Below are positions 17,423-22,379 of a DNA stretch of 59,222 nt, in pieces. Position 1 is the stretch's first letter, and the number at the start of each line of letters is the position of its first letter. Under the pieces are notes generated by a model. The model was not told the origin of the DNA, did no database searches, and saw nothing but the letters and a program-made list of their open reading frames with translations. The translations under genes and the position numbers were made by a program. This DNA comes from Basidiobolus meristosporus CBS 931.73 (taxonomy: Eukaryota > Fungi > Basidiobolomycota): the NCBI GenBank assembly GCA_002104905.1, contig MCFE01000551.1, forward strand, positions 1 through 59,222, written 5' to 3'.

Positions 17423-18991
17423 ATGCCTCCTGCCACTCCTAACTACACCCCTGCCCCCGAAACCAAGGCTTTCCGCGTCAACGCGCCCAACGTTCAGTAC
17501 ACCGATAGTCATATTTTGGCCGACTATGTTTACCAAAATACCAGGGTTACCAAGAACGAATTGGGTGAGATGATTGTCGAGCCAATTGAAACCAGCTACA
17601 AGTTCAAGACTGACCACCGTGTCCCTAAGGTCGGTCTGATGCTTGTTGGCTGGGGTGGAAACAACGGTTCCACCGTCACCGCCAGTATCATTGCTAACCG
17701 TCGCAACGTTCAATGGCGTACCAAGGAAGGTGTCAAGTCACCCAACTACTACGGTTCCGTCGTCCTCTCTTCTACCTTGAAGATTGGCATTGACGAGAAC
17801 GGCAAGGATGTCTTCATTCCCTTCAATGACATCCTTCCCATGATCCACCCTAACGACTTCGTTATTGGCGGATGGGATATCAACGGCGCCAACATGGCCG
17901 AGGCCATGGAGAGGGCTCAGGTGTTGGATGTTGATCTTCAAAGACAGCTCTATGACGAGCTCGCTCAAATGAAGCCTCTTCCATCCGTCTATTTCCCCAC
18001 CTTCATCGCTGCCAACCAAGAGGAGCGTGCCGATAACGTCTTGAAGGGCAGTGTCCAAGAGCAATTGGACGAACTCCGTAAGAACATCAGAGACTTCAAG
18101 GCTAACAACGATCTTGATAAGATCATTGTCCTTTGGACCGCCAACACTGAGCGTTTTGCCGACATCATCGAGGGTGTCAACGACACTGCCGAGAACCTGT
18201 TGAAGGCTGTGGAGCAAGGTCATTCCGAGGTCTCCCCCTCCACTCTCTTTGCCATCGCTTCCATTTTGGAAAATGCTCCATTCATCAACGGTAGTCCACA
18301 AAACTCCTTGGTTCCTGGTGTTGTCGAGCTCGCCGAGAAGCACCAAGTTTACATTGGTGGCGATGACTTCAAGACCGGCCAGACCAAGGTCAAGTCTGTC
18401 CTTGTGGACTTCTTGGTCAATGCTGGTATCAAGCCTATTGCCATCACCAGTTACAACCATCTTGGTAACAACGATGGCAAGAACCTCAGCGCTCCCGAGC
18501 AATTCCGTTCCAAGGAGATTTCCAAGAGTAACGTCGTTGATGACATGGTTGCTGCCAACCACATCCTTTACAAGAAGGGTGAGCACCCTGACCACGTTGT
18601 TGTCATCAAGTATGTTCCTTCCGTGGCTGACTCCAAGCGTGCTTTGGATGAGTATGTCAGCGAAATCTTCATGAATGGTCGCAACACCATCTCGTTGTAC
18701 AACACTTGCGAGGATTCTCTCTTGGCCTCCCCCTTGATCATCGATTTGGCCATTCTTACCGAGTTGATGACTCGTATCGAGTTCAGAACTGCCCAGATGG
18801 AGGAGTACGCACCCTTCCACTCTGTTCTCTCCATCCTCTCCTACTTGTTGAAGGCCCCAGTTGTCCCCAAGGATACTCCGGTAGTCAATGCTCTTAGCAA
18901 GCAGCGTATGGCAATGGAAAACATTTTCCGTGCCTGTGTTGGTCTCCCACCCCAAAACGAGATGTTGCTTGAACACAAGGCATTCCACTAA
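17423..18991 (+). CDS. INO1: myo-inositol-1-phosphate synthase, 522 aa, intronless CDS
   Basis: [49 protein letters not shown]; strong codon bias. Confidence 0.99.
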
Positions 18992-19369: not shown

Positions 19370-19944
19370 ATGTCAGACGACTCAGCGTGGGTTCATTGGG
19401 CAAACCATTCATTTGTTGCTGAAATCCCCTTAGAGCCGAAGCAGCCAGACCACTCATACCTACCGATAGCCTGTAGCACCACCTTGAAACGGAATCAGTT
19501 CAGTGATGACGAGTCGGAGTTGAGTTTGGACCTTGAAGAGGAGGCCACTCCGACTTCCAAAAAACCTCGTCATCTGTACTGGCCCATCGCTTCGCAGACT
19601 ACCGGAAAGTAAGGGTTATTCATGTTACGTTTACTCAAACCAGAGGAGTTAATCTTATGTCTGATTTATGAAGTGATCCCCCTGCCGAAGGGAGGTCCAT
19701 GGTCCTACCGAGCCAATTCAAGCCCCTCCGTATATCCACCCGTACGTCGCATCCCACTGAGCCCGACTTGACTGAGTACGAAGATATCAACCAGCTCTTG
19801 AATGCCGCACATAACGTTCGAAGGCAAGCCCACCCTGCGGAGGAAGAATACCGTCCGCAGCAGTTCTCAGCACCAGCCTACCAGAACTACCAAAACATCA
19901 ACGAAGTCCTGCGAGAGTTGCATCTCAACCGAAGAGGCGCTTAA
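19370..19944 (+). CDS. Small disordered protein with two C-terminal YxxINxxLxxxH helices (FAM104/VCF-like), 169 aa
   Basis: Exons 19370-19608 and 19674-19944 joined by a 65-bp GTAAGG...AAG intron, in frame; joins two ORF-track fragments. Confidence 0.75.
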
Positions 19945-20195: not shown

Positions 20196-20492
20196 ATGCA
20201 ACTCCGCAAAGGCTTCTTCCTACTTTCCATCATGTCCCTCACCTGGACGCAACCGGGTGCGGCTGGAGTTGCATTGAGCAGGCGGGATATCGTGGAGAGC
20301 CGGTACGCGCTAGACCCCGATGCCATTGACGAGGCCCTAGGGTTGGGCTTCGTGTCCGGAATCTTCACCGGGATCCCAATCATTGAGCATATTGTGGATG
20401 GTGCGTTGAACTACTTCTTCAGATCAGCCAGGAGAAGAAAGCCGGTCGAAAAGGCTCCTCCGCCAGCACCGAAGGTCGAACAGACCAGTTGA
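20196..20492 (+). CDS. Small secreted precursor (98 aa): signal peptide, RR site, amphipathic segment, RRRK
   Basis: MQLRKGFFLLSIMSLTWTQPGAAG-VALSRR-DIVES...GLGFVSGIFTGIPIIEHIVDGALNYFFRSARRRK; gene-like codon use, AATAAA ~50 bp after the stop. Confidence 0.6.
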   Translation: MQLRKGFFLLSIMSLTWTQPGAAGVALSRRDIVESRYALDPDAIDEALGLGFVSGIFTGIPIIEHIVDGALNYFFRSARRRKPVEKAPPPAPKVEQTS

Positions 20493-20638: not shown

Positions 20639-22379
20639 TCACACGAGTTCCCGGCTGGTTGGCTTGCCCTCCTGAAGCTTTCTCCCCTCTAAATACTCCA
20701 TGGCTTCTGCGTAGGTTTTCGGCATGATTCGAGGGACTTGGGCAGATTTCCCGCCAGCAAAGGTGAAGTGGAACACGTTGGTCGTGCGTTTGGTGGATTT
20801 CTCATGGTCCAGGACGTCGGCCACTACGGAGATCTGGAATTTCTTGTCTTTCCCACCCGGAGAGTAGACCACCTTGGAGTTGAGTGAGAGGATGGAGCCC
20901 ACTCCAACTGGGCTCTTGAACGAGATATCATCGAGGGCTAGGAAATATGGACGTCCTTTGATGAACAGACATGCGTTGGAGTAGGCCAGCTCAAAGGCCA
21001 GCCGCATGAGGTAACCGCCGAAGATAGAGTTCTGGATGTTGCGATCTTGCGGTTGGCAGAGGACGTAAGACTGGAGGGGGGTTTCATCCATCCAGACCAT
21101 ATTGTCAGGTCGGATGCCTTGGTCAGCGTACTTCAGCCCCTCAAGATGAAGGTCATGGATGACCAAACGTTCTTGAGCGTTCGGAGGCCTCTTCAAAAGG
21201 GATTCAGCAGACGAGTTGCGTTTGCGGGATTTCAATTCTACAATTCGGGATAAGTGGGGGCTTGATCAAGTGGGGGGGGGTGGAGGTGGGTACCTTCGCC
21301 AGCCTGGAAAAGTTTTTTCTCGGCGTCGTTTTGAATGGTGAGGGGGTTCACCTGGGCGGACTTCTTGGACTGCTTATCTCTAGCAACCATAGTAAACCGC
21401 GCGATAAGTATGGTGTCGCTGGCTTCGTTGGGGGTGCTGGGAATGGTTTCGACCTTCATCAAAACTAAAATGTTGATCAATGGGGGGGGGGCACGACGAA
21501 TACATGGGTTCTGAACAATCTACCTTCCATGGAGCTATATCCCACATAGATCACCTTTCCTACAGGTTGATTAGTGGATGGGTGGTTGAATACTGGAGGT
21601 CCGCCTACTCACCGGATAGCTTGAAATCATGTCTTGTATCGAACGGCTTTAATATGTCAATTCTATCCACAGCAGCGGTCATAATGATCAGCGATTGCCA
21701 GCCACGGCTACCGTCATCATTGTGCTTGTAAGCGACCGAAGCCGCCAGTCTATCCAGATCTTTGAAACTCGAGTTTTAGGACAGGTCAGGTGCAAAGATG
21801 ACCAGGACAACTACCTTCAAGAACTTTCCCAATTCTAGCACGCGGCGAGTAGGGTTGAGGGGAGGGGGAGAAACCGGGTTACTAGGTGGTTTGCGAGAGG
21901 TAAAGTTTCGTTCATCTACCTAACACCGCCGTAAGTATTGATGTAGTGCTCGGCAAGTTCGGGGTTGGACTTCAACGGCAGGAGCACTTCGACCACCGAT
22001 TCTTCCATCTTCTTCATGGTGACTTTTCGGGGGACGTATTCTTTGTTCGAGTCTCGGTTTGCTCCGTTTAATATGTTGAGCCAAGGCTCGGTGGAAGTCA
22101 CCGAGAAATCCCAAATCGACCCTGGGGGCGTGGTGGCAGTTTTCTCCTCTTTTGCAAACCAGAGTTGGTTAATGAAGTCAGTTAGAAAGCCAGGAAGTGA
22201 AATAGGCTGCGTATTGTACCGTGACTGCTCATGTTCAACTTTTCGGGGCGAACTGCTTGAAGTGTAGGCGAACACGTTCTAAAAGTCCGCACACCTACCA
22301 AGGAGCCCAACCGCCTCGAGGAGATCTGGCGAAGACTGGCTGCGGGAAATGCGTGGAGGGTTTTGTGGGGGAGATTCAT
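20639..22379 (-). CDS. Mitochondrial double-hotdog acyl-CoA thioesterase (ACOT9-like), multi-exon
   Basis: Arg-rich presequence MNLPHK...RTFRTCS; RIGKVLEDLDRLAA, IMTAAVDRID, YVGYSSMEV, PQDRNIQNSIFGGYLMRLAFELA, TTNVFHFTF; introns restore one frame. Confidence 0.92.

Follow-up and report, generated by a model that had tools for sequence, protein, structure and literature searches.

A candidate two-helix FAM104/VCF-like Cdc48 cofactor in Basidiobolus and Glomeromycotina

Does the small gene K493DRAFT_319642 of Basidiobolus meristosporus CBS 931.73 encode a fungal counterpart of FAM104/VCF1-2, the animal proteins that bind the N-domain of p97? We analysed the whole 59,222-nucleotide contig that carries it (MCFE01000551.1; hereafter the window) and began from its gene model (Table 1). 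When every GT...AG pair was tried, a single splice exactly reproduced the 169-aa product annotated by NCBI as hypothetical protein K493DRAFT_319642 (P0001), and a word search of proteins with exon 1 returned this protein as its sole match. Expression and splicing are predicted from this annotation and from conservation.

The comparison with Basidiobolus ranarum supports a real, conserved gene. The orthologue in this species (P0002, 177 aa, 50% identity) occupies the same place in a gene order that is shared by both fungi, running from a TPR protein and inositol-3-phosphate synthase through this gene to a ~100-aa protein, a ~454-aa protein and a ~2,000-aa ion channel. Conservation between the two proteins is block-wise with in-frame indels, and third codon positions agree at just 48% of the sites where the amino acid is identical, which indicates that the identity of the conserved blocks reflects selection rather than recent divergence. 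A spurious gene model laid over intergenic DNA would fit the unreached Pfam thresholds and the low-confidence structure model described below, as well as the dependence of expression and splicing on annotation and conservation. However, a syntenic orthologue with the same intron site and phase, in-frame and block-wise conservation, synonymous divergence at conserved residues and relatives in Glomeromycotina genera with E values down to 1e-15 all speak against this reading, which we regard as barely credible. The relative from Rhizophagus irregularis contains one phase-2 intron of 95 nt (L003 3186-3280), which starts with GTTCTT and lies just past a KRMRLDLDHD block. It does not fall at the Basidiobolus site, and intron position was rejected as a deep family marker.

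Table 1. Features of the K493DRAFT_319642 locus and its neighbours, in window coordinates.
Feature	Position	Strand	Remarks
Upstream neighbours: TPR protein and inositol-3-phosphate synthase (PF07994/PF01658)	~17423-18991	+	
Whole coding region, ATG to stop	19370..19944	+	Spliced translation identical to P0001; syntenic B. ranarum orthologue
Exon 1	19370..19608	+	Residues 1-79 and two bases of codon 80
Conserved block LKRNQFSDDESELSLDLEEE	19484..19543	+	Residues 39-58; from alignments
Basic patch KKPRH	19559..19573	+	Residues 64-68; conserved in B. ranarum
Intron, GTAAGG...GAAG	19609..19673	+	65 nt, phase 2; the B. ranarum counterpart at the homologous codon is 83 nt long and also phase 2
Exon 2	19674..19944	+	Last base of codon 80, residues 81-169 and stop codon; contains the ISTR block and both helices
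Conserved block VLPSQFKPLRISTRTS	19702..19749	+	Residues 90-105; I-S-T-R (19732-19743) family-invariant
P-[LI]-R-I-S-T-R-[ST] block	19726-19749	+	Residues 98-105
Helix 1 (predicted)	19774..19827	+	AlphaFold2 residues 114-131; VRM-like core YEDINQLLNAAH at 19777-19812, residues 115-126
Helix 2 (predicted), C-terminal	19870..19935	+	AlphaFold2 residues 146-167; VRM-like core YQNINEVLRELH at 19888-19923, residues 152-163, then LNRRGA
Stop codon	19942-19944	+	Protein C-terminal end is ...LNRRGA
Adjoining downstream small gene	20196-20492	+	98 aa; syntenic 103-aa counterpart in B. ranarum, L001 7089-7400
Downstream neighbours: 453-aa protein without Pfam family, ~2,020-aa Ion_trans channel	~20639-22379 onwards	-	

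Two short helices near the C-terminus link the protein to p97 cofactors. A six-frame translation of the 59-kb window contained exactly two occurrences of the pattern Y-x-x-I-N-x-x-L-x-x-x-H, at 19777 and 19888, with a mean chance expectation of 0.02 (100 shuffles). AlphaFold2, given a 7-sequence alignment, returned a low-confidence model (mean pLDDT 54, pTM 0.16) in which the helices at residues 114-131 and 146-167 were the only secondary structure; local confidence was best there (60-70), and the rest of the chain was without secondary structure at pLDDT 44-55. A preliminary description of this DNA had proposed a 169-aa, otherwise disordered protein with a basic KKPRH patch and with YEDINQLLNAAH starting at 19777 and YQNINEVLRELH at 19888. 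The spliced two-exon reading frame equals the annotated protein, the patch is present at residues 64-68, both helices were found at the positions given, and the prediction of two helices alone at a mean pLDDT of 54 upholds the term disordered for the remainder.

Animal FAM104 proteins are described as carrying a cNLS at the N-terminus and a conserved helix at the C-terminus, joined by a long disordered stretch, and they function with one helix. A 24-residue human VCF1 peptide is sufficient for binding to the p97 N-domain, and Y184, N188, L191 and H195, the four most conserved residues of the FAM104 helix, all touch the N-domain cleft, while N188/L191 double mutants lose binding (PMC10541173, eLife). 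Single substitutions N167A, L170A and H174A each abolish binding, which also requires p97 Y143, and the Kd of ~6-10 nM between VCF1/2 and the N-domain represents the highest affinity known (PMC10950897, Nat Commun). The complete Y, N, L, H tetrad is present in both B. meristosporus helices at the spacing of VCF1 (Y-x3-N-x2-L-x3-H), together with an Ile preceding the Asn, and each Basidiobolus core shares 7 of the 12 residues of the human VCF1 core. Helix 2 of the Glomeromycotina relatives described below reads I-N-S-[VI]-L-R-E-A-F, compared with I-N-Q-T-L-R-E-A-H in human, and basic residues follow the helix in animal FAM104 and in the fungal proteins alike. The overall build is also alike: the proteins are small and largely disordered, a basic, NLS-like patch precedes a highly conserved C-terminal amphipathic helix, and the disordered region that separates patch and helix in FAM104 is present and poorly conserved in the fungal proteins (AlphaFold2 and alignments). 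Unlike FAM104, which has the helix once, the fungal proteins carry it twice together with an invariant P-[LI]-R-I-S-T-R-[ST] block, some members have Phe (helix 2) or Asn (helix 1) at the place of the His, Pfam scores are sub-threshold, and the basic patch of Basidiobolus sits mid-chain rather than at the N-terminus.

We quantified this likeness against the published 24-residue human peptide and the Pfam family FAM104 (PF15434), rather than an animal alignment. With hhalign, the fungal helix-2 profile matched the human p97-binding peptide with a probability of 77% (P = 2.1e-5) over 15 columns. In HMMER controls for the helix-2 profile, 3 random peptides out of 200,000 and 1 shuffled peptide out of 200,000 scored as high as the human one; with a profile combining both helices, none of 400,000 random or shuffled peptides did. 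Helix 1 alone gave a weaker match (P ~4e-3, against ~1e-5 for helix 2). The match is short (~15 residues) and therefore represents motif-level similarity, not proof of ancestry.

Among the 24,736 Pfam models scanned, FAM104 was the sole family matched by more than one member. Scores were 14.4 bits for exon 2 of P0001 (E = 0.055, profile positions 68-98), at best 15.3 bits for C-terminal fragments of the Glomeromycotina relative P0008 (E = 0.03-0.045) and 19.1 bits for P0010 (E = 0.002), so that no member reached the gathering cut-off of 27 bits, and P0002, P0005, P0007 and P0009 had no FAM104 match. In every match it was helix 2 that aligned to the helix positions of the profile (~83-97 of 109). 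In a protein-language-model search, an arthropod FAM104 cluster ranked with the closest neighbours (0.85), which we treat as a lead only; a search confined to the C-terminal part produced no named match of use, and structural matches carry no meaning for a chain that is disordered.

The human p97-binding sequence that the preliminary description had given agrees with the published peptide. Its larger claim, of an unrecognised fungal FAM104/VCF member, stands as far as the tetrad, the layout and the profile match are concerned; it fails at the Pfam cut-off, and the range of the family is narrow. On sequence criteria other than that cut-off the fungal protein is probably VCF-like, and homology of the fungal family to animal FAM104 appears likely, though unproven.

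Relatives outside Basidiobolus were sought with a profile built from the last 80 residues of both Basidiobolus proteins, which was compared with 1.84 billion representative sequences at E <= 0.001. This search returned five matches, with no animal FAM104 protein at that threshold, and a single true relative, a 244-aa protein from a soil metagenome (P0005). A bacterial Ig-repeat protein (P0003, 16 summed stretches), a shark collagen-VI-like vWA repeat protein (P0004) and a short tandem-repeat peptide (P0006) were rejected as artefacts of added weak repeat scores. Their summed per-repeat scores had ranked them at E = 1e-20 to 2e-4, which calls for caution with short-motif profiles. A three-sequence profile used in a word search then yielded four further proteins at E values of 1e-9 to 1e-15, from Geosiphon pyriformis (289 aa, E = 1e-14), Ambispora gerdemannii (247 aa, E = 4e-14), R. 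irregularis (246 aa, E = 3e-12) and A. leptoticha (Ambispora; a partial protein, E = 1e-9). None of the Geosiphon, Ambispora and Rhizophagus relatives had been given a functional name, and no Pfam domain was precomputed for any of them. A first metagenome scan, with confirmation against the Basidiobolus sequence, confirmed no relative, and a second, with P0005 first, revealed two Glomeraceae-like soil contigs (L005 and L006). No Dikarya relative was detected by one search needing shared words and one two-sequence profile; since the searches able to show such relatives were limited, the observed range of Basidiobolus and Glomeromycotina is a lower bound. As judged from these searches, this is a previously unannotated family that was detected solely in these two groups and is not general to fungi.

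All members share one layout: one or two basic patches of the form K-[KR]-x-[KR], a disordered stretch rich in Ser and acidic residues, the P-[LI]-R-I-S-T-R-[ST] block, helix 1 (consensus Y-[DEM]-[DN]-I-N-[QS]-[LV]-L-x-x-A-[HN]), a variable linker and helix 2 (Y-x-x-I-N-x-x-L-R-[DE]-x-[HF]-L-x-R-R), which is followed by RR(R). The helices are spaced 37-97 residues core to core, and 6-14 residues separate the end of helix 2 from the C-terminus. Conservation in the family alignments is low outside the blocks. The preliminary description had staked its proposal on conservation of the motif in orthologues, and both helices are kept in every relative found. Tyr, Ile, Asn and Leu are invariant in both helices of all seven aligned members, which dates the helix duplication to before the Basidiobolus-Glomeromycotina split. 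The His is less constant: all Glomeromycotina members have Phe in its place in helix 2, and Rhizophagus and L005 have Asn in helix 1, which leaves Rhizophagus without a complete tetrad. Either fungal Cdc48 complexes accept a substitute for the His or the helices have a different partner.

A different partner would be expected if K493DRAFT_319642 were a conserved nuclear disordered protein whose helices bind something other than Cdc48, for instance the PAH domain of a co-repressor, which is another groove-type receptor for helices, or else a transport receptor, and its VCF likeness were a coincidence. The match spans only ~15 residues with every Pfam score below threshold, a His that is essential in human VCF1 is lost from Glomeromycotina helix 2 and Rhizophagus helix 1, the ISTR block has no described FAM104 counterpart, and a single Y..IN..L...H should arise by chance about once per proteome by a rough, uncomputed estimate of frequencies. 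Helix 1 of B. meristosporus also fits a Sin3-interaction-domain-like pattern, h..hh.AA..h, although its Ala-Ala pair is gone in B. ranarum and all Glomeromycotina members. Coincidence would have to explain why the residues kept throughout the family coincide exactly with Y, I, N and L in the VCF pattern, why FAM104 is the only recurring Pfam match, why none of the 400,000 control peptides attained the profile score of the human peptide, and why the placement of a C-terminal helix behind an N-terminal basic patch agrees with FAM104. We consider a non-Cdc48 partner unlikely, though a serious alternative.

Other helix classes were compared with the seven members by sequence patterns. The VIM and VBM helices of p97 cofactors such as SVIP, gp78, ataxin-3 and RHBDL4 are likewise short and dock in the same cleft between the N-domain subdomains, and the Arg run after fungal helix 2 recalls the basic VBM. 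Regular expressions for VIM (R-x5-A-A-x2-R), VBM (Arg-run-L-x-x-[FY]) and the SHP box matched none of the seven, these three readings of the fungal helices were rejected, and Pfam scans of family members gave no UBX match. The Sin3-SID reading of helix 1 was rejected because its h-x-x-h-h-x-A-A-x-x-h pattern is lost in 6 of 6 relatives. Sequence searches with the family profile and the human peptide found no solved structure of the helix motif in the PDB. The discoverers of VCF themselves compare it to small NLS adaptors of the AKIRIN2 and HAPSTR1 type (PMC10541173). These proteins resemble the fungal ones in being small and disordered and in supplying strong NLSs to a large complex of the ubiquitin-proteasome system; their cargo and motifs differ, and we found no sequence relationship between them and the fungal proteins.

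With a probability of roughly 55%, we favour the reading that K493DRAFT_319642 is a VCF-like Cdc48 cofactor in which each helix docks in the N-domain cleft and the basic patch serves nuclear import or placement; a FAM104-type cofactor is probably present in early-diverging fungi in a two-helix form. Each helix would fold upon binding and enter the cleft that separates the Cdc48 N-domain's two subdomains, as animal FAM104/VCF1-2 do on p97, with Leu in a hydrophobic pocket, Asn and His in a hydrogen-bond network and Tyr stacked on a conserved Cdc48 tyrosine. The patch, in which KKPR (residues 64-67) agrees with the consensus of monopartite classical NLSs, K-[KR]-x-[KR], in a check of that pattern alone, may act as an NLS and give the Cdc48 hexamer extra import signals; alternatively, it might tune nuclear Cdc48-Ufd1-Npl4 or place the cofactor with it. 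In all full-length relatives, one or two patches of this kind precede the helices, those of the Glomeromycotina (KR[QMT]R) lying at residues 5-8 and/or 24-76. We infer that the protein binds Cdc48, is targeted to the nucleus, is bivalent and shares its ancestry with animal FAM104.

The two helices need not have the same task. In a monovalent adaptor, helix 2 alone would be the Cdc48 ligand, and helix 1 with the ISTR block would recruit a partner or substrate, contact Ufd1-Npl4 or fold back on helix 2. Such a division of labour agrees with the far better match of helix 2 to the human peptide (P ~1e-5 versus ~4e-3 for helix 1), with Pfam FAM104 alignments that always fall on helix 2, with the family-specific flanks of helix 1 (ISTR upstream and, in Glomeromycotina, LTRNSHVVNELEEDLGxMEIDE downstream) and with the sufficiency of one helix in animal FAM104. 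It accounts less well for the fact that helix 1 has Y, I, N and L in all members and has the His in more of them than helix 2 does, or for the variable spacing between the helices, which suits two tethered modules better than a fixed helical hairpin; we judge it rather improbable. Because tether length varies freely (37-97 residues), the helices are best seen as independent docking modules. Two such modules per chain, in the VCF-like reading that we prefer, would give an avid, bivalent grip on two N-domains of one hexamer. It is conceivable, as speculation, that one chain bridges two Cdc48 protomers, and at a geometric guess the short Basidiobolus tether, with ~14 residues between the predicted helices, might span neighbouring clefts.

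VCF1 and VCF2 have been recognized as p97 cofactors only since 2023-24, and we found no paper on a fungal FAM104/VCF protein. The discoverers of FAM104 reported, from a helix-based search, that the family is absent from fungi, plants, protists and nematodes. We entertain, more tentatively, a broader scenario in which the VCF/FAM104 class predates the animal-fungal split, is bivalent in Basidiobolus and Glomeromycotina, where it would clamp two N-domains of one hexamer, with a gain in avidity and possibly a fixed N-domain conformation, while the patch drives import, and was lost in Dikarya; taken as a whole, this remains doubtful. If true, the published statement on fungi would be overturned, the origin of the cofactor class would move back to the opisthokont ancestor, and the protein would be the first tandem-VRM cofactor, binding two protomers of one hexamer by a tandem-helix mode that is undescribed for VRM cofactors. 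The replacement of His by Phe or Asn would then serve as a natural experiment to tell which residues of the tetrad can be dispensed with. FAM104 has also been proposed to compensate for a lost N-terminal bipartite NLS of Cdc48 (PMC10541173), and a fungal counterpart would make this proposal checkable in Basidiobolus and in arbuscular mycorrhizal fungi.

Conservation also marks segments beyond the helices. The P-[LI]-R-I-S-T-R-[ST] block recurs in P0002, P0005 and P0007-P0010, sits 12-16 residues upstream of helix 1 and is second only to the helices in its invariance; it matched no nameable motif and may be a phospho-site or an extra contact with Cdc48 or a cofactor. The start of LKRNQFSDDESELSLDLEEE, KR-x-x-[FL]-acidic, pairs in the alignments with the basic KR[MQ]R[LF] patch that the Glomeromycotina relatives carry. 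Directly after helix 1, the Glomeromycotina sequences (P0007-P0010, P0005 and L005 662-994) contain a highly conserved acidic segment that is absent from Basidiobolus, with the consensus L-[TM]-R-[NT]-S-H-[VI]-V-x-E-L-[EQ]-[ED]-[DG]-L-G-x-M-E-I-D-E.
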